Assembly: GCA_009103225.1 (NCBI GenBank)
Contig: RHPI01003599.1
Coordinates: 422,473 to 486,472 of the forward strand
From: Chlorokybus atmophyticus
Lineage: Eukaryota; Plantae; Mesostigma and Chlorokybus algae
Direction of reading: 5' to 3'
DNA length: 64,000 bases
Positions 337-50,546 of the stretch are shown here, piece after piece. Under the pieces are notes generated by a model. The model had not been told where the DNA came from. It made no database searches and saw only the letters and a program-made list of their open reading frames with translations. The translations under genes were made by a program, and so were the position numbers. How positions within the stretch are numbered: the first letter of the stretch is position 1; each line of letters opens with the position of its first letter.

Positions 337-361
337 AGCTAACATCCAATGGATGTTAGCT
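337..361. repeat. Perfect palindrome, 12-bp arms, 1-nt loop
   Basis: AGCTAACATCCA-A-TGGATGTTAGCT read directly. Confidence 0.9.
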
Positions 362-1199
362 AACTCAGATTATGTGTAAGTTGATTTTATTACACACATC
401 CCCAGACTCCTTCAATAACTGCATGCTGTGCCAAATGAAGGCGGCCGTCGTAATTGCATATGTAGTACTTGCAACAAACATGACAACGGATGTCACATCC
501 CACTCGGGGTGGAATATGCTAACGAAAGCATATACAATGAATTATAGCGTGCAAACAACATGCTATACTAAGGAGCCGCTCTCTACCATAGCATCCATTG
601 CCAATTCAGTCAATAAAGTATTCACATTGTATTGCACGTGAATATTTACATCAAAACTTATATAGTAACAATGTCAGCTTTAGAGACAGAACAATCATCG
701 ACTTGGCCAAATGTGCTATCATCACCAATCATCATGATGACGGTTGTCGTGAGAGTTGGTGTGATTGAAATGACGGATTCTCGAGCGAATTCATGCATGC
801 GCAATGATATGTATATGTAAAATATCATCAATCTTTGCACGCATTAAATACATACAAGTCGGAATCTGAGAATGATAACTTCGATGATAACATTAAGCAT
901 AAGAGGTTGCCATTGCGCATGGTTGTAATTTTGTATACATAATCGGCACAATAAATAAAATGTAGGCGTTGTGTGATGTGACGTTGAATTGGCTAAATGT
1001 AAGAGAGAGGTAAACTGTATTCATCCATGATCAGTGCTTGTGGTCATGCATTCACGATGATGATATATGATGAGACCAATCGCGGACAGCGTTCTCATTT
1101 GTTATTAATATCTTTTTATTACAGCAAACTTATAATTGTTGAAATGCAATTGCATGTAGTTAGCATCTGCATGTAATTGCTGGATGTGTGCAATATAAT

Positions 1200-3500
1200 T
1201 GCACTGTACATCAGGTTTGCGTAAACAATACAGCATGACTATGAGCCCCTTGTTGCTGGCCCCATGCCGTTGTCAATATTGACCTTGTCAGATTATGCAA
1301 CTATTGGTATACTACTCATGTCACACAAATCTCAATGCTTGCAAGATGTTTTGATTGCTAGCAAAAAATCTCAAATCAGTACATGGCAGCATACGTTCAT
1401 GCATGACTATGACTTGCGCATGATAGATGACCAGTGAAGGCCCTTGTGTCGTGCTGACCCTGCACACACATCTTCACCTAGTTTGCAATTGTCACAACGA
1501 TTCACATACCACCTCCTACTGCCCCTTCTTCTGCCACCCTTTACAGGCAACATGCAGAACTGGAAGTACAAACACATACCTTGATGTTGTGCATATGCGA
1601 TGCGGCATTGATTCATGGAGCCGGCGCGGGTGTTTGCGACATACACCATAATGCATCCGTCAATGCTGCTATGCACCTTCCCATTACCAGCCTTATGTTG
1701 TGCTGCAATTCTGTCATCCTGTAGACATTGTCGGACACAATCGACTCCACCTCAACCAAAGGCCACATGGTTCCGCAATACCGCAATAGACTTGCGACAG
1801 CTGCGTTGTCATTAAGCAAACCGGAGAAGTCACAGTTGTCGCACTGTGTCACACTTCATAAGATCCAGATCACCCAACAAACTTATTGCAAACAGTAAGC
1901 TTGCTTTCGGCAATAGCAATGAGGTCTTGCAACCAGCCGCGACAACCAGCGCAACTCTTGGGCACACAGCAATGACCAGTACGCACTAACGAATGACTTT
2001 ATTTGTGGCAACATGCTACAAGATGCTACAATGAAAATTGATTACAATGGGAATTGCTTGTAACATAACTCACCGACAGGCCGATCATGGACAGCTCAAG
2101 ATCTGACACTGTGTGAATACTGTGGCACAATTCCAGCCTCATGGACTCCAATGATTCGTCCCGCATTGTTGAGGAGGTGAGCACCATGACAAAATGTGCA
2201 AACAAGGCAGCAACTAACGACAAAGGTACACGAGTATGCTCACCTTTGTCTTTAAGCTGTGCTTGGTCCCCAGCAGCAACGCCTCCCTCTGTTGCAGCTC
2301 CTGGCGTCGCAGCAAAATGTTCTGTCGTTGCAGTGCTGCACCTTCTTGTCGCAGCTGCCTCTTCCCATTGCAGCGCTACCAGCTGCGACAAGATGTGATG
2401 ATGCTCTCCATCGGCATCATTCGCAGACACGCCCTGGAGCTGCCTAATGGAGCTTCGCCAAGTTAACACTGCTGCACTGCCTTCTCCACTGCCGCCATGG
2501 TGTCAACAAAGTACACCGCGCATGGCATCCTCACAAGCAACACCATCATGGTATGGCTTACTACCCCAGCAAATGACGAGTTGACAGGTAGTTGGAAGAC
2601 CATAGGTATGAGTATGCGCCCATGCAAGCAAACATTTCCATCAATGAATCACCTACGAAACTGGCCAGCAACCTGCTCAGGAACCCACGCTATGCTACTC
2701 TGTTTGAGCCACACCCACCCTTAAGTCGTGTGTAACCTCGGTCGAGCTCAATGCATACAAACTGTTGCACCGTCAAAGCCACCTGGGCGTGCAATGCAGA
2801 AACGGTCAACAAAGAGCACCCTACACGGTATACAAGGCAGAGAAGCACCCATCACTGATTGCCAACATGCATTTGCATACATGCACCGCATCCGCCTGTG
2901 CATGTATGCAAACACAAGTGTATCTTCCTGTGCACAGCCGCACAACTTGCCACAGGCATAGGGCATGAGAGAGGCCGGGGAGGCAGACAGATCAACATGA
3001 TGCAGTAGTACAAGAGCATGCATGTGGCTTGCATGCACACCCAGAGCAGCAGCTGGCTGAAGTTGAAGGCAGTGGCACTCACTGGCGACAGAGCTTACTA
3101 CACACTTTATAGGCATGCCATAAAGAGAGAACCACACCTCCTCCTTGTTTGCGCACTTGTGTTTGAAAGCGAAACGCTTGCCTTCCGAGCTGGTAAAGAA
3201 CCTTTAGATGTATAGAAACCCTGGCTCCATACAGGAGCAGACGCCTGCAAGCAATAGCAGCGAAGCGGGTGATCTCACCAGTCAAAAAGGGGCAAAGGAA
3301 GCAAACCCAACCCATCGCAAGACCTCATGACGAATGCCCGACGACCCCCTGCTGTTGCCGAGCACGCTACGTGCAAGAATGACATACCGTTGTTATGGAG
3401 CTGCAATAAGCCTTGCGTTTCACAAAAGTTCCCAAGTTGTGGTTGCGCCAATGTCCTTGTGCATGCCGGTGTAACAGAAGGAATCTATCGGTACTGCAAC
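1200..3500 (-). mobile_element. Highly degenerate, possibly KDZ (Kyakuja-like) transposase relic
   Basis: Fragments across frames, in the order expected for KDZ cores: GCIMVYV/GVCRKH..HES (about 1650-1590), GPSLVIYH (about 1450-1425, YD-like), YTN.SC, then GQQQ. Cys-rich fragments lie upstream (2750-3300). Many stops and frameshifts; motif recognition is from memory only. Confidence 0.3.
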
Positions 3501-4213
3501 CAGGGGCATGAAAGCGCGCATGCACGCGTGGTTCACGTCTCAATATGCGGAACAGTGTGCGTGTTGGGGTGGGGATGGGATGCATGGGGCGGTGCTGGGG
3601 TGGGTGCATGTGGGCACGGGTTGAGAATACTCTCTCTCTTTCTCTCTGGAGCCGGAACTGCACAGGCTGAGCTGTGCTCGCTGCGGTTGCTAGGCTAATC
3701 TGGTAGACTGGCACCAGTACCAGTAATTACAGCGACCATGACGACAAAGATTCGTTCGACCAACCAGCCGTCCATCGCCTCAACCATGTCTGTCATCCAC
3801 TGAGGAATTGCCTGGGCTGCCACAACGTCTCCTCGTCCGTCAACCCACTCGCACGCCACCCGCTGAGTCATCCATCTCAGTATACAACCCGCCAAGACGT
3901 GCAAGTTGCGGTGCAACCAACACCCTCCTCCTCCTCCTCGGTTGTTGTCTTTCTTCCAACCTTTCCCTAACCACCTTTTGCATGCACGGTAGCGGAGCTG
4001 GCGGCGGGGGAGGGAGAGGGGCAGGGGAAGAGGGAGGCTGTCGCGCACGCCGTTTGGGCTACATCCCCCAGGCGTAGATCAAGGCAGGCAGGATGGATGG
4101 GTGGGTGCTCACGTCGGGTGTGCATCAAGCAAAAGTCTATCGTCTTTACCACATGCCCGAGAGCAGTGCCAGTACCACAGAAGTTGATGTGTGTGTGTGT
4201 GTGGTGGTGGTGG

Positions 4214-4870
4214 NNNNNNNNNNNNNNNNNNNNNNNNNNNNNNNNNNNNNNNNNNNNNNNNNNNNNNNNNNNNNNNNNNNNNNNNNNNNNNNNNNNNNNN
4301 NNNNNNNNNNNNNNNNNNNNNNNNNNNNNNNNNNNNNNNNNNNNNNNNNNNNNNNNNNNNNNNNNNNNNNNNNNNNNNNNNNNNNNNNNNNNNNNNNNNN
4401 NNNNNNNNNNNNNNNNNNNNNNNNNNNNNNNNNNNNNNNNNNNNNNNNNNNNNNNNNNNNNNNNNNNNNNNNNNNNNNNNNNNNNNNNNNNNNNNNNNNN
4501 NNNNNNNNNNNNNNNNNNNNNNNNNNNNNNNNNNNNNNNNNNNNNNNNNNNNNNNNNNNNNNNNNNNNNNNNNNNNNNNNNNNNNNNNNNNNNNNNNNNN
4601 NNNNNNNNNNNNNNNNNNNNNNNNNNNNNNNNNNNNNNNNNNNNNNNNNNNNNNNNNNNNNNNNNNNNNNNNNNNNNNNNNNNNNNNNNNNNNNNNNNNN
4701 NNNNNNNNNNNNNNNNNNNNNNNNNNNNNNNNNNNNNNNNNNNNNNNNNNNNNNNNNNNNNNNNNNNNNNNNNNNNNNNNNNNNNNNNNNNNNNNNNNNN
4801 NNNNNNNNNNNNNNNNNNNNNNNNNNNNNNNNNNNNNNNNNNNNNNNNNNNNNNNNNNNNNNNNNNNNNN
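4214..4870. other. Assembly gap (N run) after a (GT)/(GGT) microsatellite
   Basis: Continuous Ns. Confidence 0.99.
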
Positions 4871-5035
4871 CATGTGTGCACCGTGCTGATGCACATAGTG
4901 TCTAGGCTGACACATAGCGTTCAAGCCATGATTTGATAAGTATCTCAAGCTCATGGTAGTTAGCTAACTGCAAGCTGTGGTTTACAAAACTTGTACAGGC
5001 TGCATATAGCATTCATGCCACGGGTAATCTTAAGC

Positions 5036-5093
5036 AGCACGCCACAGCTGGCAATAAGCTGATTGATCAGCTTATTGCCAGCTGTGGCGTGCT
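5036..5093. repeat. Perfect palindrome, 28-bp arms, 2-nt loop
   Basis: AGCACGCCACAGCTGGCAATAAGCTGAT-TG-ATCAGCTTATTGCCAGCTGTGGCGTGCT. Confidence 0.95.
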
Positions 5094-6959
5094 CCTTACT
5101 GCAGTGCTTCCGGTTGACCCGCATTGCATTGGTTGGTCACATCTGACTATTGCTATCTTTGCCAGCCGTAGTTTGACACACAGCATGCAGTTCTGGTTGT
5201 TTCCACAACATGAGTTCATTCTGCTTGAACTTCTTGTCTGCCAATGACTTGTCTGCTAGCATTGAATTCTGCGCATTGTCACATGTTGCGAGATGCAAGC
5301 TCGGTTGCCAACATCAACCTGACCTACATACCGCATGGTATGCCTGCTGTGCGGTTGAGTTGACAGGACCATGGGCCTGTTACTGGCTTCCTTCCCTTCC
5401 CTTGATACCTACCCAACATCGCTGCACGTGCACATGCGCGTGCAAGTTGGCACTAACCACTTGTGGCAAGAGTATTTTTGGTGACATGCATCTAAGCTCT
5501 AGAGCTCAGCATCTCATTGCATGCTGAAGACCGCTGCTGCCTGTTAGGCTTCACTGTTCATTGCATGGTGGTCAAGTGGTGCAACATGAGCAGAGTGTTG
5601 TCAAGTGCTGAGTGTACAACCTTACTACACTTGAGACTTGCTACACCAGCATTACCTGGTGTAGCAAGTGTATGTGTATTGCAAGCGTACATGCTTTGGC
5701 AAGCTTGGTTTCATAAGTATAGTGATTTGACTGTTGTCATGTTCCACAAGGAAGCATAGTCTGGTCGTAAAAATTGTCATGCATGTACAAGCCAACACTT
5801 GGCATCATGCCAATCCCTATTCTCCATGACTTGACAACCAGAGTGACCAACAGACAAGATTTTGCTGCGCAGCTTGGACGTGGAATTCCTTAGGCTGCAT
5901 CCGTTTATGATTTTGCATGGCGTCGCAGTGTGGGCGGTGGACCTCCTCGGCTGGGGCTTTAATGCCATGGATGCGACAACGGGAGTTAGGGACTGGGGCC
6001 CTGTGGCAAAGCACGAGCTGCTGTGTGAGGTGTGTACTTGTCGAGACCAATGCAGTTGTTGTTATTGTTGTTGTCGTCGTCGTCATCTGCATGTGCTCTC
6101 TTCGCATGCAACTGTCCTCAACAGTTGTGCCATGCATAAAGTACAAGTAGCCCACCAACTACTTGTACTTTGCTTTGCGAATGGACTTGCTTTCACGCGC
6201 TCTCAACATTGACATAACTTTGTGTGCTTGCGTGCGACAACCGTTTTAGAGATCAACCATTGGCAAGCCTGCGGTGCTAGCTGGGGCTAGTTTGGGAGAC
6301 GCTGCTGCCATTGAGTTCACCGTCAACCACCCATGTGGTAAGTCATGTCTCGCTTTGCTTATGAGGGTTGCCATGGTGGTCATCCTGTTTGGACTTCTGT
6401 CCGCAAGCCACGCAGGCAGGTCACAAACTGATGCTTATGGATGCCCAGGGCTTTAGTGATGGCGTTGGCAATAACAGAAAAGCCTGCCAAGCCCTGTGAC
6501 AACAGCAGGATTGTGCACAAGACACCAGCACTGATTGTTTACTGCTTGACAGATTGACATGCACTATCCAGTTTTGCGTGCAGATCGATGTGTTGCAAAG
6601 CTGGCCGTTGAGGCCTTGGCAAACAGGTTGGCTGATTATAATCAGATGTTGGCTACCACCGATGCCAATCAGGTACACTTTAGCAGTCCTTTCATCTACG
6701 CAGTTGCGCTGATGTGCTCATCTCGCGCCTGTAGGCTGGGAGGTTGCACACGCATCTGCCAGGATGGCGTGCCAACATTGAGTTCATGCGCAGCAGAGGC
6801 TACAGGGTCACATGCTCTTCAAACCATGGTATGCAGCAATCTCAAAAGTGTTTGCTCTCTGCAAGTTTGACATGCTGGTTAATCCTGTCAACTTAGCGTA
6901 ACAATGCAGCCTACCAGTTTCCGCTATGTGCATTGGGACATTGTGTGTGTGTTGCACGG

Positions 6960-7560
6960 TAGGTGACGCATGGTGGACTGGTACTGCTTGTGGCGTGAGA
7001 ACGATGGTATACTCAAGCCGGAATATGCTCCAATGAGTCTGCTCAGCAAACTGCAATGCTTTTGTCACTTCAGTCATGTTATGCGCTGCAGCATTTAAGC
7101 ACTGTCATGCAACTAAAATCTCAACACACCCATGATTAGGACGTGATGCAAATAGTGTAGTGCATGCTCATCTGAAGTCTTTGTCTGCGCAGCTGTTGGT
7201 GCACATTCTTCCAGTTTCAAGGTTGTGATATTGCGCAAATGCGGGCATGTCACTCCCTCACCTGACACAACCGGTGGTAGCCGTAAATGAGATACCCAGT
7301 TTTGCTCGACGGCAGTAAACATTTGCATGTGCTTGCAGTGCGAGTCATGCTGCTTTGCAGATGCAGGACATGTAACAAAAGTATTAGTAAGCATTCATTG
7401 GTTTTGTGGGCGAGACTCTTTGAGCTTGTCAGAAACTGCCGTAGTGACACCGCTTTGAGCCTATGCTAGATGCTACTAACCAAGTAAACTCGCTGTTGGC
7501 ACTCCAGTCGTCAACAAGATTCTGTGCTGGTCGCAGCAGCATTGCTTGCAGGTGAGTGTA
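6960..7560 (-). mobile_element. Degenerate KDZ (Kyakuja-type) transposase catalytic core, pseudogenised
   Basis: Minus strand gives TCKQ..HRILLTTGVPTA (from 7553), GV..YG.F..KES, YLIYGYHRL, then LH..NHGC and, 26 codons later in the same frame, QFAEQTHWSIFRL. Order and spacing match the KDZ pattern TCxK/LTxG/HG..YGF/ES/YDxAC/HxxNH..C/EQ. In-frame stops are present. Confidence 0.5.
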
Positions 7561-8167
7561 GCTCTGCGTGGTTCTGACCTGCACTCCACAACTGTCACTT
7601 GGGTGTGCACCTTGTCCGACACATGCATCTTGAAAACTTGAGAGATGTTTGACCAGGTAATTGCGCGAACTTCTGAGCATAGTTTAGGGCTGACTAGAAT
7701 GCAACAGTGTGTTGCTTGCCATCATGTTTCGCAACGACACACTAACTTATCTACCACATTGAAAATATAAGACAAAATAGAGGAGCCCACAATACAAGCA
7801 AACATGACACAATGCTATACAAGGGACAAGGAAACAAAAACCTACCAGACAACACATATGTAGCATACTGTCTTTGTAAACAAACCCTCACCACCTAAGC
7901 TCAACTCAGCTATGCTATGCTAGGCGCTGCACATGTGCGATGAGTTTATACGCAATTGCCAGACATGCCCGCCAAATAGGACAGCGGTAGACCAGTGGCA
8001 GGCTATATATATACCTGCAGGGGAAGCGCATCGCGGCACGACCAATCAACACAACCCCAAGCTCGGAACTTCCGTATTGATGACCTATAATGTAAAGGAG
8101 ATAAGCATCATGATATCCACAAAATGTTGAGGAGACATCAAATAACCAAGATGCCCAAGGTGCTCAC

Positions 8168-8461
8168 CTTTTCGAAGCTTGCCCCGCGCTGCTTCGCTTT
8201 TAATCGTAGCAGCTCTAATTCGAGCAGCACTACCTTCTCAGCTTGCAGTGCTGCCTCTGTTTCTCTCAAAGCGACCTCTGATTCTCTCAGCGTCTCTAGC
8301 TGCGATAACGTGAAACTTCTGTCAGGATGAAGGGCAGGCTCGCTCTCAAGCTGCCTCTTCAGCTTCTCAATTGTACTCATATATGCCTCCAGTTCCTTGT
8401 CCACCGCCTCCATGTTGGAGACAATGTCGGCGATGGCAGCCTGAATGGTAGAGGCCGCCAT
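8168..8461 (-). CDS. First exon of an unknown coiled-coil protein (98 codons, MAASTIQAAIADIV...RGASFEK)
   Basis: ATG at 8461, open frame with strong E/K/L/R heptad character, ends at an AAG|GTGAGC donor; downstream exons not identified. Confidence 0.55.
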
Positions 8462-8921
8462 CCAGCCTGCGCGTGTGAAGCAGCAGCAGCAATAAGCACT
8501 CGGAACGCCTGCATGCTCTGTACGATAACGCAAACTATAGTGCACAGCATCATCGCATGCAACCAGCATCGGGCTTTCTACCCCATGAAACGCTGGTAGG
8601 TGAAAGGTGAGTGGAAGGCGTGGGGATGAGCAAGCGCGCGCATATAAGCATAGACCTCTCATTGCCAATCAAAACCGAAAGAATTGGCCAGCAACTTGCT
8701 CAAAGACCATACTCCGCGTTCAGTCGCACATACCTTCCAGGCGTGTAAACACAGAAACCAAACAAAACTCCGACACTCCTCGCACGCCGGTCGGTGAGGC
8801 TGGCACGAGGAGAAGGGAGCGCTAAGCTTAGTTTGCTAGCATGTGGACTATTGGTTTTGCCGGAACTACTATTTCAGACGCCAATCGCCTCCACTCTGGC
8901 TAAGTGTGTCGCACTCGGTGA

Positions 8922-8990
8922 CTCGCACAGTATGAGTCATACTGTGCGAGGACAGCCGAGTGTCATACTGTATGACACTCGGCTGTCCTC
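8922..8990. repeat. Two overlapping perfect palindromes (14-1-14 at 8922-8950; 21-1-21 at 8948-8990)
   Basis: CTCGCACAGTATGA-G-TCATACTGTGCGAG and GAGGACAGCCGAGTGTCATAC-T-GTATGACACTCGGCTGTCCTC. Confidence 0.95.
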
Positions 8991-9258
8991 AGACACGGTT
9001 GGTTACGGCCGGCAGAAACGGCTGCCGGAAGAGTGCAGTGATCAGTGCCGGACTTTGTCGCAGAGCAACTTGCCTGCAGCCACTTTAAATGGCTGCGTGC
9101 GAACAATGCAGGCAAGATTGCGTTTTCATCTAAGACCGGCGGCGTTTTAGGCCGCCCGCAGCGAATAAGTTGGTCCTTTTAGGGTTCCTCGCCCACCACC
9201 GCCGCCGCCCCCTGCAGCCGCCGCGGCGTCGTCGCCGTCGCGGTTGCCGTCGTCAACC

Positions 9259-10435
<1,177 letters not shown>

Positions 10436-11231
10436 ATAGGACTAATTGGGATTGCAAATTCTACGTATCAATCATCACTCTTGCGAATGGCTGTCTGGAA
10501 TGCATGCTCGGTGCGGTTATATTGCGCATTCTTGCTTGTTTGTTCTGCGTGCGTCAACTGCAACTTAGTTGCAACAATTATTCAGTTTTTGCTGTCTGGT
10601 CTATGTGGGCTTGTTTCATATTGCTGCAATTAGTGCAACCATGCAAGGAGGGAGTTACCTGAGCTGTCAGTGGGTTCACTGGTGCAGTTGTCTATGTATT
10701 TCCAATATTCGTTATGCTGCGTCCAGCCCAAGTATGAGGTATCATTGCTTGGAATGTTTGCTCGAGTCAACAAAATCAGATCATTCTTAGTCCACCAGGT
10801 CATTCTTGTAGCAGCTATTGAGTGGAGACCACCTTATTTATCTGCGCTCTCTTGTTTCAGTTTAAGCATCGCATGTGTTGCTTAGCGCGGCAAGGCTACC
10901 TACCGGAACCCAGTGGCAGTTTGATACAAGATTGATAGTAACAGGCTTCAAGTGTTGTGGCAGCACTGCAGTGGCCAATTGTTGTCAGACGGACTTGCCC
11001 ATGACTGGAGGCTAACGGGTCTGCGATCATAGCGTAACATGTTTTTGCTGTCATGTACGAGCAGTGTACATGTGTGTTTGCAACCCATGAACATCATCGT
11101 GACCACAACACGGGTTGCCAACATTGCAAAATCAATGCCCGCATGCGCAGCTCTGGGTGCACCACAACTCTTACCCGCTGCTTGGCATATAAAAAGGCTG
11201 CTTCGCAGCAGGCCACACAGAGAAGCTATTA

Positions 11232-12602
11232 TCACCTGGTTGGCACAATGTCATCTATCTTTAAGATCATACGAACTGTTTCTGTTGCCAACGTGATTGC
11301 ACTCGTGGTGACAAGGAGAGGTTGCACCACGTTCTCTTCAAGAATGTTGGTGATGGCGCCCTTGCGCACGTTGATGCCAGTGTTCACCTCGCCCTTTGCG
11401 TGCAAGTTGCGCAGCTCTGTGACAATGGCGATGGGGTTGAGGCCCGCGTTCTCTGCGAGCGTGTACGGGATGACCTCCATGGCGTCTGCAAAAGCGCGCA
11501 CGCAATATGACTCCATGCCGGTCAGTGTCTTTGCCCACTGTCCGAGCTGCCTCGAAAGCTCAATCTCGGGCGCACCCCCTCCGGCAATCAGGAAACGCTT
11601 CTGTACAAGACATCTCACGACGCAGAGTGCTGCACAACAAAGATGACATACGATGTTGGTGAGTTGCTTGAAAAAAAACTGGCGAGCTTTACATCAGCGT
11701 GACACACGCGCGACCATGCACACAGAGACACACCACCTTGAGCAGCCAGCTTACCGTCGTGTAGACTGCGCTCTGCCTCGCTGAGCACAAGGTTGTTGCT
11801 GCCTCGGAGCAGCACTGTAGCTGTCCTTCCCATATCATGGATACCCGTGATCTTCACAACCTTACCCCGCCCCATGTCCACCTCCTCAACCATATCAGCA
11901 GTACCCAGCTTCTCTGGCTTGAAGTGGTCAATATTTGATATCGGCAAGCAGTGCAGTGTCTTGCTGATGAACTCAATCTCATCCCGCTCAATATCCTGCA
12001 GCACATGCATGTCATGTAGCAGCGAGTGCTGAGAGTTTCATTGCGCTCACTGCATGTGCAGCGTATAAGTGTTGATTACCTTCACAACCATAATCTTGGC
12101 CTTGGCCAAGTAGTGCAACGATAGGTCTGTCACAGCGTCGCGCAGAATGCTCTTTTGGATTAGCAAAACGTTGCAACCCGCAGCTTTGATTTTCTTCACG
12201 AGGTTCAATATATAGTTGCGCTCCTCCTTGAGTATCCTGTCCATCTGCATGAGGCATAGACATAAGCTATCACCGGGGAAAAGCAAGAAAGCATGCTGCA
12301 TAACCTGGCTTTGCATGCATGTTACCACGCAGTGCTAAGGGAGTGGTGACATCCACTATGCTAAATATATATNNNNNNNNNNNNNNNNNNNNNNNNNNNN
12401 NNNNNNNNNNNNNNNNNNNNNNNNNNNNNNNNNNNNNNNNNNNNNNNNNNNNNNNNNNNNNNNNNNNNNNNNNNNNNNNNNNNNNNNNNNNNNNNNNNNN
12501 NNNNNNNNNNNNNNNNNNNNNNNNNNNNNNNNNNNNNNNNNNNNNNNNNNNNNNNNNNNNNNNNNNNNNNNNNNNNNNNNNNNNNNNNNNNNNNNNNNNN
12601 NN

Positions 12603-12637
<35 letters not shown>

Positions 12638-14295
12638 CACCAACACACTCACGCATGCAGACAATCACTTGCACATATCCAACGACTATCAACCATCAGC
12701 AACTCTCACCGCAGCATAGTCTTGGACGATAACCGAGTTTTCTATGTCTGTTTTCGGAGGCGACAGCTGGAACTGTATCAACCCAATCCTTGCGTTGGCT
12801 ATTGAGGTGGGCCCGCCGGCGGACTTGGCCGACTTCTGATCAAACACCAGACCATCGACCAGCTCCGAGTCATCAACAGTGCCGCCCAGCTTTTGCACAA
12901 TGCGAATGTCGCGCAAGTCCACCGATCCCGGTCGGTCCGGGTCAATCACGCGAAGCACGCAGTCAACGGCCATGGGCGCCAGTAGAGAGGAGTACTGACT
13001 CACAACCTGCTCAACACAAGCGTTGCAATTATGTGCAACAGCACAACATAGCAACATCCATGCATTGCAATCAGAAGCAACACCAGCAACACGGTAACAT
13101 CCACATTCACATGCATAGCAACATGGCAACATGTTGCTTTGCTTGTGGTGCTGTTTTATCCGGAGCCAACAGATGCACTGCAACTTGAGCACAGAAACAA
13201 GACAAAGCGCCGAATCATGTGTGCACGTGCATGCAACAATGCAACGGAACCTGTTACTGGTCACAACAGCAGAAGCACACTGACCTTGCTTGCAAGTGAA
13301 GTGGTAGCGCTTTTCAAAAGCGACTCCCTGTCTGTGAGTTCAATCGGAATGGCCATCCCTTGGTACACCTTCAACCAACATAATCACAAAATGAGGGTTC
13401 CTTGCGTGGCACTGCAGCACACACAACACTACACACTGCTTGGGTTTGAGAGCGACCACCTTGCAAACACACCCGACATCAGCGCACCTCAACAGCCTTG
13501 TTGGCAGCCCTGAAGAGCGCCTCTGATATGATAGTGGGGTGGATGCCCTTCTCCAGGAGCTCCATGCACTTGGCCAGCAGCGCGCCCGCCAGGACAACCA
13601 CCGAAGTGGTGCCGTCCCCCGCCACAATGTCCTGCGACTTGGCCAACTCCACCAGCATCTTTGCTGCGGGTTGCGTGACCGACATCTGCGATGGAAACAC
13701 ACGCATTGTAGCAACAACGACTGCAACAAGCTACTTGATCCGATTGCAATGGTAATTCTGAGAACAAACATGCACATGTAATCCAATGCTTACATGCACA
13801 GTGCACAAGCAGCAATGCAGTAACTAAAGATTGCAAGTGGTTGCCAATGTGAAATTGCGTTTTCTGTTGACAAGCTCTTCAATATTTAACTTTGCTTGCT
13901 GGACATTTCTAAAGCACGAAAGAACGTGCCATAAGCATGCAGACCTTGATACATCCTCATGGGTGGCTGATGTAGCCTTGCATTGCATGCAGGTGTGAGT
14001 GAGGTGTACAATGCATGGGTGTGCACTTGTGAGGAAGCACGCGACGGATCTGTGAAGCGCTGACCTTATTGAGGATGGTGGCGCCATCATTGGTAATGAT
14101 GACCTCGCCGTCCGCCGCCTTGAGCATCTTGTCCATGCCCTTGGGGCCCAGGCTGGTCCGGACAGCGTCCGCAACGGCCTTGGCGGCCATCATGTTGGTG
14201 ACCCTGACGTCATCCTTGCGCTTGTTCTCGCTGTACGTCTCGCCCTTCCTGCCACCACTGCCCCCTCCCCCAGGAACCACCCCTGCATCCCCCAT
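11232..14295 (-). CDS. CCT4: T-complex protein 1 subunit delta (CCT4), multi-exon
   Basis: [95 protein letters not shown]; TGA at 11232. Confidence 0.97.
12365..12633. repeat. (AT)n microsatellite containing an N gap (12373-12602), in a CCT4 intron
   Basis: AT repeats on both sides of the N run. Confidence 0.95.
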
Positions 14296-14373
14296 TGCCA
14301 CAACGACACCCACACCCACACCGCCGCCGCCGCCGCCGGAAAGAAATGTAAGACAAAATTGCGAGAAACACTT

Positions 14374-14382
14374 TTAGGGTTT
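14374..14382 (-). promoter_or_regulatory. Telo-box (AAACCCTAA) upstream of the CCT4 start codon
   Basis: Exact AAACCCTAA on the minus strand about 80 nt upstream of the ATG. Confidence 0.55.
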
Positions 14383-14567
14383 TGTTTGACGGTTACAAAC
14401 TGCAGTCAAACAACTCAGTTCCTTGTGCAGCTAAATTGCATGCGGTTTGACTGGTGTCAAACTGAGAAGGCCACGTAGCTGGCGTTGTGGGCGGCGGCGG
14501 CGGGAGGACGAGGTGGAGGTGAAGGAGGAGGAGTTGCATGGGCTCACAGGCCAGTAGACCATCCGTA

Positions 14568-15401
14568 ATGGCGGCTGCTCAGAAGGCTAAGAGCGCGGTG
14601 GCGGAGAACCCCGTGGTGGTGTTCAGGTAGGTCTGGGGCCAAGGTGTCGGCCAGCACATGCCTGACCGTCTTGTCGTCATCGTTGGCATGTCGTTGACAT
14701 TGACCCTTCTGAACTAAGTCCTCCTTGTATTCTCTCCGCAGCAAGAGTTACTGCCCATACTGCATAAGGTACTTACCATGCTGCTGAGCTTGACAGCAGT
14801 GGTGTTGTGCATGTTGCTGCTTGAAACCTATGAATTTTCCTCAAACAGCTTGAAGAATCTAATGGCCAAGCTTGGAGTCAAGGCGAAGGTGTTTGAGCTG
14901 GACCAGCAGTCAGACGGCAGCGACGTTCAGGCTGCCCTTCAGGAGTGGACTGGCCAGCGGACGGTTAGTACATGCACTTTGTATACAGTGTCACAGCTAA
15001 ATTAGAAAAGATGTCCTTGTCACTCCTTGATTTGACTTTGGTTTTTACTGCAGCGTGTGTGCACAATTAATCTGTCTTGCTCTTCAGGTTCCCAACGTGT
15101 TTATAGGTGGCAAGCATGTCGGAGGCAATGACGGTGAGTGGTACTATGATGCCATGCAAGATGATCAGTCAGTTTCTTGCCTATACTAGGCAAGCCATTG
15201 CCTAGTATGCAATGCAGGTTTCAGTTGAGTCAATGTGTGATAGTATTATTAGTTGCGTGTGAGTGAGCATTTATTCTGTTTTCTGTTCTGCTCTAATCGA
15301 ATGGTTGGTTTCTCTTCACAGTTTGTCCTGCTGCAGATACCGTGGCGCTACACAGCGCGAACAAGCTGGTGCCAATGTTGAAGGCTGCGGGCGCATTGTG
15401 A
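14568..15401 (+). CDS. Class I dithiol glutaredoxin (CPYC), 5 exons
   Basis: MAAAQKAKSAVAENPVVVFS|KSYCPYC..|LKNLMAKLGVKAKVFELDQQSDGSDVQAALQEWTGQRT|VPNVFIGGKHVGGND|DTVALHSANKLVPMLKAAGAL*; GT-AG introns. Confidence 0.95.
15176..15208. repeat. Overlapping inverted repeats (8-3-8 and 11-4-11) in a glutaredoxin intron
   Basis: CTTGCCTA-TAC-TAGGCAAG overlapping ATACTAGGCAA-GCCA-TTGCCTAGTAT. Confidence 0.8.
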
Positions 15402-21782: not shown

Positions 21783-22393
<611 letters not shown>

Positions 22394-22560: not shown

Positions 22561-22611
22561 AACCTTGTGAGTGCTTTGTGCTATGCCATAGCACAAAGCA
22601 CTCACAAGGTT
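22561..22611. repeat. Perfect palindrome, 25-bp arms, 1-nt loop
   Basis: AACCTTGTGAGTGCTTTGTGCTATG-C-CATAGCACAAAGCACTCACAAGGTT. Confidence 0.95.
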
Positions 22612-33999: not shown

Positions 34000-36413
34000 T
34001 CAACTTGTAGCTTTCCATATCCTGCATGTGTTGTCTTTAGATCCCGTGATCACTGTGTCCGCCTCATAGTTGAATGCGCACGAAAAGATCTCATCAGTGT
34101 GTCCCTCCAACACCTGAAGCATCAGCATCCAACGTGTCAGTGCTTGCCACGTACATGCGATCACTCTCATGGCATCCCCTCACTCCTCATTGCAAGTCAC
34201 ATCCGTGTGTATCAGCATTGCTGTTCTTTAGCAAGTACACACCTGCAAGCATCGTCCTGTACTGGCGTTCCACAGTCTGGCTGTCCGGTCCGCCGAAGCA
34301 GTCAGAATGCGTGAGCCCTGAATAGAGAGTAAGTTGATTGGTTTCAGGTGCACAGATATGTTGCCATCAGGTATGCGCCGGACAGGCACACAGAGACATG
34401 CACAACTGAGAGTGGGTGACTGTACCTGCATGGAGAAGGTAGCTTTGCTGATCTCTCCACCATGCCCGACAAGCACCACCTCCGCCTCTGCACCCCCTCT
34501 CCCCGCCGCCCATACACGTGCTGTCCCGTCCGCACTCGCGCTCACCACCCTCGTACCTGGTATAGCAATCGCTCCACTTCAACCAACAATCACCCACATG
34601 TCATCCCACATATTGTCTCATCCCTCTCACCCTACATACCTGCGGCATCCCACGCCACGTCCAACACCTCGTCCTCGTGACCCCACCACGTCTCCACGCA
34701 GCGCCCGCTGCCGGCATCCCACAACCGAGCACTCCGGTCTATCGACGCCGTCGCCGCAAGCGAACCCGAGTACGAGAGCGATGCCGTGGACACCTCAGCC
34801 GCATGCCCCGCCAAAGACTACACATGGAGGTGAGTACATGTTGTTGTGTATGTGGTTTGTATGAAATATATTCAGACTTACCTGTGTGCATCTTCCTGTT
34901 CTCACGTCCCATATTCGCGCCGTCCCATCGAAGCTGCCGGTGATGACTCGGTTCCCGTCCGTAGCGAACGCCACGGAAACTATCTCAGCCGCGTGTCCAG
35001 CTAGTGTTGCCACCTCTATCCCGGTGCTTACGTCCCACAGACGCGCCGTCGCATCCATCGACCCTGCAAATGGCATTGTCTCATGCATGAGAGAAGGCAC
35101 TCTTGTGTGTGCCTGTGCGTGTGCGTGTCCGTGTGTGTGTGCGATTGCGCGACTGTGCATGCGCGTGTGCGAGTGTGTGTATGCGTGTGTGCGTATGTGC
35201 GTTAAGCAGTAATATCCAGCTGTCTGCATACCAGTGGCGAGGATGTTGCCGCCGACGGGTGCCCAAGCGATGCATACGAGTTCGGCCGAGTGTCCTCGCA
35301 GTGCGCATAGGGACGGTTGTTGCTGTGGTGACGATAATGATGTCGCATCTTTACCTGCCCCTCCTCCTCCTTCATTGCCACTTCCCTCGCCAACACTCCA
35401 CACGCGCGCGGTACGGTCGAACGATCCCGTCGCGACCAGGTCACCGTACGGGTTGTTGAACGCCACGCAGTATACCACGTTGCGGTGGCCCTCGAGACAA
35501 GCCAGCTCCTTGCCATCTGTGAATATGTTGGCAGTTTGTAAGTGATCACAAACCACTCTTATGAACTCATCCTTGTGCATGAGTATAACGTGTACCTGAG
35601 GTATTCCACACGCGTGCGGTGCGGTCGTACGAGCCGGTGACAAAGCGCTCCCCGGCCTTATCGAATGCGCAGTTCGTCAGCGGTAGTGCATGTGCCCTGC
35701 AATTGCACAGTCATTTGCCGTACGTTCAGCTCATAATGCCTGTCAACCAGCAAAGTAACTGTTGTGTCCACCTTGCAAAGCAGCCCATGATTGTTTGACG
35801 AGATTGCAATCGCTTGGGTTCTGTTTCAGACCCCAAGTGCACATTGTCTGCCTCATTGGTTGTGACGGAAACATGCAACCATATACAGCCTGCACAAGTC
35901 TCAGCTCCTACTTCCGGCTGATGCATCAGCAGAAAGCAGGAAGACAGTCTAGATCCACATCAAGCCTTTGCAGCTGGCCATCAGATCTCTCACCTTAGCA
36001 CCCTCGACAGCGCGTATTCCCCCGGCGGCCCCTTCCTGGCCCTCCCCAGCAGCCTCCCCACCAGCGTCGTCACGGCGGCCCTCCTCGACGGCGGCAGCAG
36101 CACCGGATCGCTCCTCAGAACCTGATGGTGATGATCAAGTTGATGATAATGTTGTTCTCTTTGTTGGTGATGATGTGTGTATCTCACGTACCTGGTCGAC
36201 GACCTCGTCGACGTCGTCGTTGGGGTGCAGGCCCAGGAGGTCGATGGTGCGCTGGCGCAGGCGGCCGCCCTGCTCGTACTCGACCACCACGCCCGGAGGG
36301 TAGTAACGAGCCAGGAGACGCTTAAGCTTCGGTGGCGCTGAACCCGCAGATCCAACGCCGACGCTGCCAGCAACCATACCGCCACCGCCACCGCCGCCGC
36401 CGCCGCCCGCCAT
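34000..36413 (-). CDS. DAW1: Dynein assembly factor with WD repeats 1 (ODA16/WDR69)
   Basis: [109 protein letters not shown]; start at 36413 or 36377. Confidence 0.95.
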
Positions 36414-36668
36414 CGCCGCCTCTGTCCCCAGGTAACGGCGCCACGTGGCGTCACCACGGCGAGGGGTTTGTTGATGGCTGCTGCTTGAGTGTCACGTGAC
36501 GATGTGATCACACAGAAGTGAGAGTGAGTGAGCCGTTGGTGATCGAAACGGGTTTGCTGAGCCTTTTTGAGGTCGGATCAGTGAGCCAGTCTGTGAGCTG
36601 AGCGGCGACATTGGCGGCAGCATCAGCGGCGGCGTTGTTGGCGGTGGCGGAGGTGGGGGTGTTCGAAA

Positions 36669-39633: not shown

Positions 39634-40674
39634 ATAGTAGTAGCACTTGAAGCAGCATTTGAAGCATTCTGCAGCCTCACTCTGCAAACAGCTGCTGCTG
39701 TTGCGTGCACACCTCGCCAAACGATTGCGAGTGCATCATCAGAGTGTCGGGAAAGCACATGCAGCATCCAGGATTACACGGATGATCCAATCAGGCTGGC
39801 CCCAAGCCGAGCACACGTGAGATGTCCCGCAGCTTGCGTGTGCTTTGCTAGTTAGCAGGGTCACAACAGCCCAGTAACTCTCCATCACTCATGATGGTGA
39901 TGATGATGCCCGAGAATGTAAGCATGCGTGCAGTAAGCCCAACACATGTAAACATTATGGATGTGAGAGAGTATGCGCATGAGAGACGGTGTGCAACATT
40001 GGTGGACTCGAAATGTGGCACTTGTAGTTGCAGCGTGCATGCGCGTGTGCTGAAGCGCCAGCAGTCCGACCAGCAAACGGCCCGTGTTCGCAAAGCGTGG
40101 CCCCGCTGCAGGTGCGCTGCTCAATTGATTGCTGTGAGGCGCGTGGGCTGAAGTTGAGCTGTTTGTTGCTGTTTTGCTTATACAGTTCTTAGGTGCACAT
40201 CTCCCGGAGCCATCTCTCCAAGTCATTACCAGTTGTTGTGCAAGTTTACTTACCTACGATTCAATGTTGGCGATATGCTGCACCAGTGGACGTTGTGCGT
40301 ATGACTCTCGCATACTGTGCCTGTGTTTAGATAAACGAGGAAACATTTATGACATGCGTGCATCGCACATGCAGCTGTTGCACCAGCCGTCTCATCAATG
40401 ATCAGAAGCTCGCCTTCGTGTTGGCAAGACAATTGTTGTCAAGACTGACAAGACAACGGTTGCTTTTATGCAATACACAATAATTACTTCATGGCCAACA
40501 AAGCGCCTACCTGCTTGCATGGAGTTTGCTTCCCCTTTTAGATGCACTGTTGCGTGCACACCACAACAGAAGGTTTTCCGCACTTGTGTGGCATACACAG
40601 TTGAACAGCTTGCATACAACAACCACAACAACAACCAATCCTATACGCGTGCGTGCACGAGTGCGACTTGATGC

Positions 40675-43550: not shown

Positions 43551-43795
43551 CGTCCCCCGCCTGGCCTGGCCTGGCCTGGCCTGGCCTGGTCGAGCCTGTG
43601 GCCTGATCAGGCCACCAGTGGCAAATTTTCATGCAAATGCGCTGACTTTCCGCGGCGGCGGAGGAGGATCAGGCGGCTGCGGCGGCGGCGGCGGAGGAGG
43701 AGGAGGAGGAGGTGGTGGTGGTGGTGGAGGACAAAGAGGGGTGGTGTTCAAAGAGTAGTAGAGTAGTGGGTTCAGTCAGCCAGCAGCGTTTCAGC

Positions 43796-45758
<1,963 letters not shown>

Positions 45759-46245
45759 CAGAGACATGTTGTTGGCGTAGACATTAGGCATGTGCATCGC
45801 ATGATGCAGGTATGTTGTTTCTGTACAGTTATTGGGCGGTTGTATCTGCCAAGCGACAAGTACTGGCATTGGTTTGTGTGCTGGACACATAACGTTGTAA
45901 CAGATTGTTGCAAGTTTTGGCGTACACTCTGGATGCTGATGAAGTTGAGACATTGTCGCTGTGTTGTTCGCAATCAAGCCATTTGCAACTTACAGCATTT
46001 GTTGAAGCGAACGATGCATTTCGGCAGTTAACGTATCGGGTGCCTGGAAAGTTGGGCAAGCTGCGATACATGCATATATACAATGGTTGGCAACGCTGAA
46101 TGCCACATAATCAACTAATTTGATGTGGAAGAACAACCGCAAGTCAACTTGTTGCGGTCCCACTGCCATTGCTTGCTAAAGGTGCACTACTCAGGTTGTC
46201 ACTAGCTGAAAATGGCTTGTAGCAGAGGTAGATCAGGGAGGATTA

Positions 46246-47167
46246 CTACAACTTCAGCGCTGCCAGATTTCGCCGACACGATGGAATGCGCTGAGAAGCA
46301 CAACACTCTATTGCAGGGGAGCACATGTGTTTGAACAAAATCTGCAATCGATACGGTTCTGAGTATGACGGCTTGCTTACAAGTACAAAGCCGTTATAAG
46401 GCATGCGTGTCTCTGAAGACCACAGAGTGCCCTCGTGCAGTAGCGCGTGCTCATCAAATGTCACCCTAAACAGAAAGCAACCAGGCCATTGCTGTCCAGA
46501 CTGCAGAGTAGGAGTAAAGTGCCAAAACCCATATGCCAGTTGTTTGGGAGGCAGAAAATACGATCCGAACCAAAGGCTGGCATGAACTTGCGCGTCAACA
46601 CGTCTCAAAATGCCATCGCTCCTGTGCAATTGAAACAGCCCAGGGATGGTCTTGTGCATGAATGTCCGCAGCTTGTCCTCAGCCGCTTCCAAGGCAAAGC
46701 TGCTACGGCGAGTGGGCGGTGTGTGTGTCGATATGACAAGGCCCCCATTGTGCGTTTCCATGGACCTGTGAGGCTTCTTCTCCGACGCAGAGCCGGAACA
46801 AGAAGGTATCTGTCGCCATCATGCAATATGCAAAAGAACACGCAGCTTTCGTGGCTCTGTGTCTGATCCGGATCCGAAAGTACTGAAAGAGGTTGTAACA
46901 GCTGCGCACGTGCTCCATCAGCCCTGGGAATTCCGGTCCAGTGCTCCTTGTGGTGTGCAGCTTCAACTGCGAGAGTGGTCTGTTTCCATTCTTGTTGACG
47001 CAGCGCATGCACGCCAGGTCCCTCGTGCAGAGCTTACTGAGGATGAGCTGCAGAAGGTCAAAGTTCTCCAGCACCTGAGCTTGGCTCGAGTGTGCTAGAT
47101 TTGGGTTGAAGTGGACATTGGCAGCAGCGAATTGAGCAGCCCTCCTGGCTGCACTCCTGGTCTGCAT
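46246..47167 (-). pseudogene. F-box family paralog A, frameshifted
   Basis: MQTRSAARR..QVLENFDLLQLILSKLCTRDLACMRCVN; homology to paralog C is split over three frames (ESCVFFCILHDGDRYLLVP; PPTRRSSFALEAAEDK..LFQLHRSDG). Confidence 0.8.
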
Positions 47168-47363
47168 TGTTCCTCTCTGCAAAACGGAGTCCTTGCTTCA
47201 TGACATGCACTTGAAGCCTGATTGAAGCGATACGCCCAAAGTCAGGCGTATGGCTTCAGTCAGGCTTCATTGGTGAAGGGCCATCATATGGAGCTGCTGC
47301 GTTGGCAGTAAATATGAATCGCATTGCCTTCTCACCACTGGCCAAAGAGCAGCACAGTGTTCC

Positions 47364-47391
47364 AGCTATCGTGCCAGCTGGCACGATAGCT
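47364..47391. repeat. Perfect 28-bp palindrome (no loop) inside an imperfect 58-bp one (47349-47406)
   Basis: AGCTATCGTGCCAG|CTGGCACGATAGCT. Confidence 0.92.
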
Positions 47392-48391
47392 TCAACACTG
47401 TACTGCATGCAGCTGAGGACTTCGCAGCAACGCGCAACATTTCTAGGAATCATCGTCGTTCACAACTGGCAACTCAGTCACAGTGCTGCTTGCAAGACAT
47501 GTTTGCTTCTTTGATAGCGCTTGACCGTACTGCCATCAAGCACGGTTTGTGAAACCGCTGCTAGGCAACTGTGGCTTGACAGCTGCAGCTATCATACACA
47601 CTCATCACAACCCTGAAGCACTACATCAAGGACTTACAACCGGCTTCAAGCACACTGTCAACACATAGCAGTCTACCAACCTTCGCCAGCAGTCGAAGCT
47701 CCGCAGTCCCATCTGCAGTGGTGATGACAGCACCGCTGCCTCTGCCCTTACCACGCTTGCTGGCAGGCCCGCTCCACGCACACTGGCAGCCTTGGCTTCA
47801 CATGCTCCCGTTCACCGCAGCATGCTAGGCATCATCATTACCAACGCCACCGCACCGCCTTGCGCATGCCCTACCACCGCCTCGTTGCCGAGGCAGCCAA
47901 AGCAACGTTCCAACCCCTGCTGCAGCCCCAGCTTGGGTCCCCGCCACCGCCGCCGGCAGCGCTGCCGGTGCTAGCTCAGCACAGCACTCCAGAGCAAAGC
48001 TGTGTGAAGCTGCTGTGCTTGCGACATACAACACACAGCTTGCTGCCACCATGCATGCGCAACTTCAGAACGCTTGCGCAACTTCAGAACGCTTGCGCAT
48101 GCATGGTTCAGAAGTCGGGGAGTCACAATCGTTTCTTACTTATGACTTATGACTTGCAAAGCTTGCATGTGCAGCAAACAATGCTTGTCCTGAAGGGAAT
48201 CTTTTCGTGCCAACCCACACTTGATATGTACACTGACTGTCGCGTACGTGTGGAAATCTGAACAGCATATGGTTTGCATGTGCAACCTCCCTAGTATTGC
48301 CAGCACGTGCAAGCTGAAGAACGTCCGAGACAAAAGGCTTGCGACTCCGTATGGTTTGCTGCATGTGCAAGTGGTTGCAAGTGCATGTGCA

Positions 48392-48458
48392 TGTGCAAGC
48401 ACTCTGAAGCTTGCCATGCATGTGACACATGCATGGCAAGCTTCAGAGTGCTTGCACA
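48392..48458. repeat. Perfect palindrome, 33-bp arms, 1-nt loop
   Basis: TGTGCAAGCACTCTGAAGCTTGCCATGCATGTG-A-CACATGCATGGCAAGCTTCAGAGTGCTTGCACA. Confidence 0.95.
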
Positions 48459-49314
48459 AGCATGGCAATTGCATGGCGGCAACAAGCTGTGTGTGGCAAA
48501 AGTTGCACAGCACAGCACAGCAGCTTAGCGCATAGCACCATCACGGCATGCTTTGCTCTGGAGTGCTGTGCTGGGGCGGTGGCGCCGGCGACGGCGGCGG
48601 CGGCCGCGGGGCCAGCTGGGCGCAAGCGACAGAAATGTTGTTGATTTCCTTGGAGGAGGAGGCGGTGGGAGATGAGGTGGCGATCGTGATGACCTTGCGT
48701 GCTGCTGTGACGGGAGCATGCGCCCAGGCTATCAGTGCGTGTGCGAGCGGGACGACAACTAGCGTGGTAGGGCAACGTCAGTCGTGCTGTCATCGCTACC
48801 TTGGCTAGGGCCGTTGAGCCTCAAAGCTGGCCAATGTTGGTAGACTGCTATTCAACAGTTGTTGTCGGAGCCTCCGTCAGTCTCTGGGACAATCAGCCTG
48901 AAGCTGTTTCTTCAAGTGCTTGCTGTCGTCCTTTAGATTTGCCAAGATTGAGGAGGGCATTACGGGCAAGTGCTCATCAGCTAAAGGTAAATGTGTCTTG
49001 CACTTTACAACTGTGACTGAGCTGCCAGAACAATAGGCTACTACGAAGTCTTTGTTTGCATGCTATCAATAATTGCATGACATTACAGTGCAGCACAGTG
49101 TGCCAGCTGGCACCACGATGGCTGGCACACTGGCACTAGTCGCTCTGAAGCTAGTGCTTGCAAAGCAACGGCGAGTAAGCTCTACTACCAGTGTAGCAGC
49201 TTCATCAAGTTGCACTCCATCAGTCAAACAATCACTTGAATGCAGTCACACCTGGCATGGGAAATAATCGCTTGTCGGTAAATAATAAAGACTCTATGTC
49301 ATGCAGTGAGGGAA

Positions 49315-50269
49315 ATGCAGACCAGGAGTGCAGCCAGGAGGGCTGCTCAATTCACTGCTTCCAATGCCCATCTGATACCAAGTCTAGCCAATTCTTGCCA
49401 AGCTCAGGTGATGGAGAACTCAGACCTTCTGCAGCTCATTCTCAGTAAGCTCAGCCCGAGGGACCTGGAGTGCATGCGCTGCGTTGCGTCAACCAAGAAT
49501 GAACCGAGCCGCCCTCATAGTTGAAGCTGCACACAACATACAGCGCTGGCCTGAGTTCCCAGGGCTCAAGGAGCACATGCGCCGCTGCTATAGCTATTTG
49601 CAGTATCTTGCGAGACTGCCACAACGCCAAGGTTTGGGCTGGAATCCGGACTCGGAAAGCTGCCTGTTCTTCTGCGTGTTGCATGATGGCGACGATTATC
49701 TTATGGTCCCGGCCGTGAAAGAGGCTGCGCGTCGTCAGAAACCTGCACGCAGGCCCGTTCCCGGTACAATAGGTTATGTTGGGGTAGGACTTGTCATAGG
49801 GACACGCACACCGCCCACTCGCCGCAGCGACTTCACCTTGGAACCAGCTTGGGACAAGTTGCAGGCATTCATGCAGAAGACCATCCCGGCCCTACTCCAG
49901 TTGCACAGAAGCGATGGCAGTCTGAGACGCGTTGACGCGCAAGTTTGGGCCACACTTTCGTATAAACTCAGCTTTGTGGAGCCGAACAACTTGGCGTGGC
50001 GTTCTTGACACTTTTCTCCTACTCCGCGGTCTGGACAGCAACGTCTTGGTCGCTTTTATATGATGGTGAAGTTCACTAGAGCACGCGCAGCTGCAGGAGG
50101 GCCACTTGGGGCCTTCAAGTACACGTATGCCCTGTCACGGCTATGCCCTGGTGAGCAAGCCGTCAACTTCAGAAGTGCATTGAGTGCAGAGCTAGGGATT
50201 GAACACATGTGGTCCCTGAGATTTGCTGTTGCATTTGACATCGGCCAAAAGCTGCAGCATCATTTCTGA
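49315..50269 (+). pseudogene. F-box family paralog B, frameshifted
   Basis: MQTRSAARR..QVMENSDLLQLILSKLSPRDLECMRCV, then a TGCGT duplication shifts the frame; WPEFPGLKEHMRRCY, ESCLFFCVLHDGD, LLQLHRSDGSLRRVDAQV continue in another frame. Confidence 0.8.
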
Positions 50270-50521
50270 AGCTGTAGTGATCCTCCGTTGCCCTCTGCTG
50301 CAAGCCAATGTCATCTATTGACAACCAGTAGTACATCATCGGCACTCGTTGACAAGGGTGCTGTAACAGTTGAAGCTGCCATTGTTCTCCATCTCCATTT
50401 CAGTTGGTCGTTCAGCAATCAGCATTTCCAATGACTACATCGCGGCTTGCGCATACTGCCTAGCACCTGATGCGTTGATTGCCATTGTTACCTAGTGCGC
50501 CACTTGCAGTTACTAACTACA

Positions 50522-50546
50522 ATGTAGTACCATCATGGTACTACAT
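50522..50546. repeat. Perfect palindrome, 12-bp arms, 1-nt loop
   Basis: ATGTAGTACCAT-C-ATGGTACTACAT. Confidence 0.9.

Follow-up and report, generated by a model that had tools for sequence, protein, structure and literature searches.

A 64,000-nucleotide (nt) stretch of the nuclear genome assembly of the alga Chlorokybus atmophyticus (assembly GCA_009103225.1, contig RHPI01003599.1, positions 422,473 to 486,472; hereafter, the window), which is part of scaffold Chrsp75 and has a G+C content of 52.7%, contains nine perfect, near-loopless palindromes with arms of 12–33 nt and loops of 0–2 nt. This number far exceeds the chance expectation, and at the three sites for which a homologous copy is available in the window, the palindrome is the derived state and lies between collinear flanks. 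The DNA of the alga likely carries these palindromes; that they are real nuclear DNA made singly by short-range template switching is the explanation that we consider probable, with less assurance. A literature search found no report of nuclear palindromes or palindrome enrichment in Chlorokybus.

We scanned the window directly for perfect inverted repeats, recording arm and loop lengths. The scan returned all nine palindromes that a sequence-only reading of the window had claimed, with identical coordinates, arms and loops, together with the chains of overlapping palindromes that it had described (8922/8948, 15176/15183 and 31923/31931). The sites, listed without strand, are as follows (F-box units A and B belong to a gene cluster described below):

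337–361: perfect palindrome, arm 12 nt, 1-nt centre, sharp ends (scan).
5036–5093: perfect palindrome, arm 28 nt, 2-nt centre, at the 5′ end of a plus-strand gene; predicted RNA folding energy –54.1 kcal/mol (scan).
8922–8950: perfect palindrome, arm 14 nt, 1-nt centre, at the end of the 5′ untranslated region (UTR) of a minus-strand gene for a 110-amino-acid protein (Chlat1/8132).
8948–8990: perfect palindrome, arm 21 nt, 1-nt centre, between divergent transcription starts (approximately 8880–8936 and approximately 9205).
15176–15208: chain of the form X-X′-X, in which a repeat with arm 8 nt and loop 3 nt overlaps one with arm 11 nt and loop 4 nt at 15183 (scan).
22561–22611: perfect palindrome, arm 25 nt, 1-nt centre, 172 nt past a (CT)303 run (scan).
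31923–31964: overlapping pair, arm 10 nt with loop 3 nt (31923) and arm 16 nt with loop 2 nt (31931–31964) (scan).
47349–47406: palindrome in F-box unit A, with a perfect core at 47364–47391 (arm 14 nt, loop 0); the full arm measures 29 nt and has 3 mismatches.
48392–48458: perfect palindrome, arm 33 nt, 1-nt centre, upstream of F-box unit B.
50522–50546: perfect palindrome, arm 12 nt, 1-nt centre, with more ACTACA copies alongside (zig-zag).

The palindromes at 8922–8950 and 8948–8990 overlap by 3 nt and have one 10-mer in common. Weaker palindromes with an arm of 10 nt and no loop were found by the scan at 41268 and 42963, and imperfect ones were found at 13108, 47212, 47349 and 62782. An (AT)16 run abutting the assembly gap at 12373–12602 was left out as simple sequence.

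The excess over chance proposed in the sequence-only reading held when the window was compared with 100 dinucleotide-preserving shuffles in 2-kb blocks. For arms of at least 12 nt and loops of at most 3 nt, the window contained 9 sites, compared with a shuffle mean of 0.03; for arms of at least 10 nt and the same loops, the corresponding values were 12 and 0.36. The local density is thus approximately one palindrome per 7 kb. In an outside comparison, 68 kb of sequence surrounding DAW1-like genes in Haematococcus, Batrachochytrium and Drosophila simulans contained no palindrome with an arm of at least 12 nt and one with an arm of at least 10 nt, whereas the window had 9 and 13, respectively.

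The excess depended on loop size. Perfect repeats with arms of at least 11 nt numbered one at loop 0, six at loop 1 and two at loop 2, and for longer loops the number per loop size was approximately 0.5 (3–8 nt), 0.38 (9–16 nt), 0.19 (17–32 nt), 0.09 (33–64 nt) and 0.03 (>64 nt), compared with a chance level of approximately 0.015 per loop size from a uniform-base estimate. The excess was therefore maximal at loop 1 and reached the background level past loops of approximately 64 nt. Short arms (7–9 nt) were enriched three- to seven-fold at loops 0–4. A smooth decay with loop size, accompanied by imperfect members, is expected of an ageing mutational spectrum. The arms end abruptly, and except at 47364 there is no complementarity in the flanks beyond them. 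Six of the nine long-arm palindromes have a 1-nt centre; this bias is only suggestive, because it is absent for arms of 7–9 nt and there are nine events.

[quoted passage not shown] Pre-event states were taken from paralogs inside the window, which allowed a comparison at three of the nine sites (47364, 48392 and 31931), each with collinear flanks. Two of these lie in a cluster of F-box-like open reading frames (ORFs) at 46246–59541, comprising unit A on the minus strand and units B and C on the plus strand, which share blocks of approximately 74–84% similarity in coding and upstream sequence. The homologue of the 48392 site is located as follows:

51730–51960, plus strand: unit C homologue of the 48392 site, in an imperfect, ancestral-like state (paralog alignment).

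At 47364, units B and C hold only GTGCCAG|CTGGCAC (arm 7 nt), within a longer imperfect repeat. Unit A has this shared core and approximately 11 extra nt at its right, which are the reverse complement of the left-side AGCTATCG and bring the arm to 14 nt, and both of its flanks can be aligned with units B and C. At 48392, the unit C homologue is an imperfect inverted repeat of nearly equal length. According to a hand count from the alignment, identity to unit C is approximately 82% in the right arm, which is the general level between units B and C, and approximately 60% in the left arm. Because the left arm resembles unit C at only this lower level and yet is 100% complementary to the right arm, the left arm of unit B was overwritten in one step. 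The third site, 31931, sits in copy 2 of a local tandem duplication, of which copy 1 occupies 31725–31865. Copy 1 has only TTACACAGCC-GTGCAAAC, followed by unrelated sequence. In copy 2, approximately 7–8 nt are inserted, and the reverse complement of the sequence just before takes the place of approximately 16–20 nt; the insert also matches, in reverse complement, a motif located 47 nt upstream. All three compared sites hence contain a reverse-complement copy of neighbouring sequence between flanks that are collinear on both sides, and by inspection a single event accounts for the clustered changes at 48392 and 31931 better than independent mutations do.

The sequence-only reading had regarded 47364 and 48392 as young insertions that the paralogs lack. 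Their derived and templated nature stands, but their absence from the paralogs does not: the palindrome at 48392 overwrites an imperfect repeat like that of unit C, and that at 47364 extends an arm-7 palindrome present in all three units. Unit A also contains, at 48056–48099, a 19-nt unit repeated 2.3 times with 100% identity, which is related to the GCAAGC-N8-GCTTGC motif of 48392; the motif is arranged in tandem in unit A and inverted in unit B.

The proposals of a recurrent process acting on unrelated local sequence and of fold-back or template-switch synthesis agree with these observations, since the arms have no family sequence in common and the three paralog comparisons fit such synthesis. 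Under short-range template switching, a growing strand, during replication or repair synthesis, would quit its template where a small self-complementary motif already exists, copy 10–35 nt from the opposite-sense strand (the other parental strand or itself) and then go back to the original template. Such an event would either perfect an imperfect inverted repeat or leave a short insertion or replacement in inverted orientation. The enriched mini-palindromes with arms of 7–9 nt may act as switch points, and the X-X′-X chains (8922/8948, 15176, 31923 and 50522) could arise if the return point lay upstream of the leaving point, or by repeated events.

Intramolecular snap-back requires a loop of at least 3 nt, and a 1-nt centre is therefore unexpected from it. 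Such a centre would suggestively fit a switch to the other parental strand, or the opening of a hairpin-capped end. The latter leads to another explanation, in which the palindromes are scars of double-strand breaks with hairpin caps, produced by hAT- or Mutator-type excision or at ends primed by fold-back. A hairpin opened far from its tip would leave long additions resembling P nucleotides before end joining, although we consider this route improbable. The loopless or 1-nt centres, the latter at six of the nine sites, agree with such scars. A covalently closed hairpin with a 1-nt offset is described for hAT transposases, and the 1-nt centre would fit this geometry. However, no duplicated target-site remnants occur beside any palindrome, arms of 21–33 nt far exceed the usual footprints, and at 48392 and 31931 sequence was replaced and not just added, which is unexpected from end joining after hairpin opening. 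The missing remnants and the two replacements weaken the explanation by hairpin-capped breaks, to which we assign a low probability.

The palindromes also lack the hallmarks of transposons. The sequence-only reading had stated that they are not miniature inverted-repeat transposable elements (MITEs), and the analysis agrees: the longest words common to the arms are 8–10 nt, and no target-site duplication was found. MITEs and foldback elements were rejected on the basis of this limited sharing and of flanking direct repeats of 0–2 nt, and a self-BLAST of the window gave no cross matches among the palindromes. An excision footprint with a target-site duplication was rejected because the flanking direct repeats do not exceed 2 nt. 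A Helitron 3′ end was likewise rejected, as no CTRR-T occurs within 22 nt of any of the nine sites on either strand.

As the sequence-only reading had noted, none of the nine palindromes lies in a recognised coding exon. The palindrome at 5036 is at a gene start, those at 8922 and 8948 lie between divergent starts, and those at 47364 and 48392 are in the spacer that separates F-box units A and B, which are divergently oriented. This promoter-side position could reflect preferential formation at promoters, or mere tolerance there. If hairpins in mature mRNA are selected against, palindromes would persist mainly in promoters and intergenic DNA. The same positions would be compatible with a selected function, such as palindromic sites bound by proteins in bidirectional promoters, or genes for hairpin RNAs whose perfect pairing is maintained, and further points in its favour are the strong predicted RNA hairpins (–13.5 to –61.7 kcal/mol across the palindromes) and the conservation of a stem-loop in the upstream sequence of all three F-box units. 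However, 33 nt of perfect pairing is beyond the needs of any binding site, and the near-loopless hairpins have no RNA contig cover. Because the palindrome sequences are mutually unrelated and the homologous paralog sites are imperfect, a selected function is less probable than hairpin-capped breaks, and we regard it as very improbable.

Another explanation is a library or assembly artefact, in which fold-back chimeric reads, GapCloser fills or local reassembly by Pilon would have written palindromes that are absent from the DNA. The published assembly is based on short reads only and was produced with SOAPdenovo2 (k = 85), followed by GapCloser 1.12 and Pilon (PMC7027972). The window has large runs of N at 4214–4870 and 12373–12602 and single Ns at 249, 44428 and 55952. 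None of the nine palindromes touches or spans an N run, and the sites are independent of continuity across the two large gaps. Two sites are near Ns, and this proximity is compatible with an artefact: the palindrome at 5036 starts 166 nt to the right of the gap at 4214–4870, and that at 337 starts 88 nt to the right of the single N at 249, which is preceded by a poly-C run. The quality of the assembly can be gauged from the following feature:

55790–56114, no strand: assembly artefact, two identical 162-nt copies around the single N at 55952.

This duplicate is an undetected contig overlap from scaffolding or gap closing and no biological tandem repeat. Two further tracts are suspicious, and together with the duplicate they favour an artefact. 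A poly-G run of 309 nt at 44409–44717, which has the single N at 44428 inside, probably arose as an artefact of sequencing or gap filling, or represents a collapsed homopolymer. At 21784–22389, (CT)303 forms a perfect microsatellite, uninterrupted over 606 nt, which would be unusual in an assembly from short reads if this long microsatellite were real.

Several properties of the sites speak against an origin in assembly. The arms of a fold-back chimera reach the fragment end, whereas here they span 12–33 nt and are followed by collinear sequence again. At three sites the flanks are collinear with paralogs at near-ancestral spacing, arms of 12–16 nt are far below any assembler overlap length, and an artefact would not steer clear of recognised coding exons, as the sites do. 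With k = 85, moreover, 85-mers across palindromes of at most 67 nt and their flanks should have been repeatedly present in the reads, and it is unlikely that a short-read assembler at this k would invent the signature of a template switch. Among the publication titles listed by a literature search on GapCloser and palindromes, none, judged by title alone, points to such an artefact.

Independent data were available as Logan contigs aligned to positions 4871–10870. These came from the RNA-like runs X1 and X4 (2021) and X2 (2013), and from a low-depth, DNA-like run, X3. The palindrome at 5036–5093 is unbridged: X1 record 1 stops at 5037, record 2 starts at 5081, and depth is zero across 5038–5080. 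Similarly, 8937–8990 has no contig cover. X2 record 9, a spliced minus-strand mRNA, stops at 8936, which is the centre of 8922–8950, and contigs of X4 and X1 end at 8880 and near 8875, respectively, the latter inferred from the depth table. That contigs halt at both places is compatible with an artefact. However, the contigs that end at the 5036 and 8922/8948 palindromes have no loose tails of other sequence, and contigs from independent runs read through two repeats that have short loops and belong to the same spectrum:

5636–5669, no strand: perfect inverted repeat, arm 14 nt, loop 6 nt, in exon 1 (probably the 5′ UTR) of a plus-strand gene (scan).
6138–6171, no strand: perfect inverted repeat, arm 13 nt, loop 8 nt, intronic (scan).

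The first is bridged by X1 record 2 (5081–6027) and X3 record 12 (5610–5925) without any difference at the repeat, and the second by X3 record 13 (6064–6216) with 0 differences. The contig stops are compatible with real hairpins or with transcription starts placed at the palindromes, and the contigs offer no alternative sequence at these sites. Branching of the de Bruijn graph was rejected by reasoning as a cause of the contig breaks: the centre is non-self-complementary and the arms are shorter than 31 nt, so that no 31-mer equals its own mirror and k = 31 graphs need not branch there. A metagenome scan with a 31-nt flank of 8990 gave no match. Taken together, we consider an assembly or library artefact unlikely, although less so than hairpin-capped breaks or a selected function.

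The following points weigh against short-range template switching in real DNA. The ancestral states were inferred from paralogs and not from orthologs, and the cross-species control amounts to only 68 kb. The assembly is a short-read draft with proven artefacts of the GapCloser type, two sites (5036 and 337) lie <170 nt from an N, and no independent contig spans a near-loopless palindrome at the three sites (5036, 8922 and 8948) within 4871–10870. In addition, the preference for a 1-nt centre at six of nine sites, in itself a small sample, is unexplained by simple microhomology-guided switching.

The closest known system is short template switching, or quasi-palindrome correction (Ripley 1982; Dutra and Lovett 2006; Löytynoja and Goldman 2017, PMC5453318), for which the conversion of quasi-palindromes to palindromes and four-point template-switch patterns have been described (PMC5453318). 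As in that system, adjacent sequence is copied as its reverse complement, imperfect repeats are perfected, clustered differences go back to a single event, flanks are collinear and the products can form hairpins. In contrast to known cases, the local density here is very high, the centres are mostly 0–2 nt, and paralogs, instead of sister species or resequencing, supplied the ancestral states. Fold-back priming at breaks and fork switching in origin-dependent inverted-repeat amplification (ODIRA) (PMC10622511, PMC10766183) similarly involve a strand switch at a short inverted repeat and a head-to-head junction; however, they yield kilobase- to chromosome-scale inverted duplications, whereas the palindromes here measure 25–67 bp and show a return to the original template. 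Artefacts of library preparation and whole-genome amplification (PMC3946424, PMC6218980) also join inverted sequence with little or no spacer, but they are terminal in the read or fragment and extend as far as the fragment end, whereas the palindromes are short and internal and lie between two collinear flanks. Foldback elements, MITEs and Helitron 3′ hairpins resemble the sites as short hairpin-forming inverted repeats in non-coding DNA, and differ from them in their common sequence, target-site duplications or CTRR ends. The palindromes therefore represent a further, newly observed case of an established kind of mutation, at a local density that is unusually high.

Template switching has been proposed to create hairpins in DNA and RNA in a single step, new microRNA genes among them (PMC5453318, PMC10710096). 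It has been studied mostly in bacteria and primates. If the sites are true, an early-branching relative of land plants exhibits the process densely enough for many events to be polarised, and the location, centre geometry and fate of the products (small RNAs, promoter effects and instability) become measurable. If they are false, a widely used reference assembly carries a systematic artefact. A high rate or retention of short-range strand switching that is genome-wide and specific to the Chlorokybus lineage is a tentative extension, which we consider doubtful. The sequence-only reading had likewise suggested an unusually active fold-back repair pathway or a tolerance of cruciforms in this lineage, and that the palindromes could seed hairpin small RNAs. 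Were the extension to hold, extrapolation from 9 palindromes in 63 kb to 74 Mb would give approximately ten thousand perfect near-loopless palindromes, with promoters and spacers as their main locations; the preference for 1-nt centres would hint at a particular enzyme geometry, and the alga would be a natural system for the origin of palindromes and hairpin-RNA genes.

The contigs also delimit genes next to the palindromes: a plus-strand gene with a first exon at approximately 5081–6027; a minus-strand gene with exons at 7785–8082, 8166–8465 and 8733–8936; and a highly expressed plus-strand gene starting near 9205. The minus-strand exon at 8168–8461 has 100% identity to the 110-amino-acid protein jgi/Chlat1/8132/Chrsp75S07577. 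This gene was searched with exon 2 alone; the protein has no Pfam domain on record, and a word search returned only the eukprot Chlat1 entry, which has no contigs, and no other relative. At 8004, X1 and X4 lack 6 nt that are present in the assembly and in X2, and X2 is therefore closer to the sequenced strain than X1. At 5963–6988, a second contig occurs in X1 and X2 (depth 152.8 and 14.9), with 8 clustered differences in 5963–5985. Its joints, 6029>6421, 6473>6737 and 6818>6988 (the last joint containing 30 additional letters), are not of the GT..AG type, and the contig probably derives from the transcript of a paralogous gene that aligns here in part. Contigs of X3 (2018, labelled as another organism) align across 5344–9710 at 2–4× depth, and several are identical to the window, introns included. 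This suggests the presence of Chlorokybus DNA in the X3 sample through contamination, co-culture or mislabelling.

In the F-box cluster, the ORFs of units A and B are split or short, and these two units seem to be broken. The minus-strand ORF at 56062–56838 has a Pfam F-box match, a word search with the ORF of unit A gave no relatives, and exact look-ups of the ORFs of units B and C and of the Chlat1 protein P0001 gave no match. An exon of a TCP-1/cpn60 chaperonin gene (12692–13264, minus strand) lies directly to the right of the gap at 12373–12602, and the gene therefore probably extends into it. For the minus-strand WD40 ORF at 34798–35643, the best match was jgi/Chlat1/8139/Chrsp75S00607, and other relatives are named dynein assembly factor DAW1.

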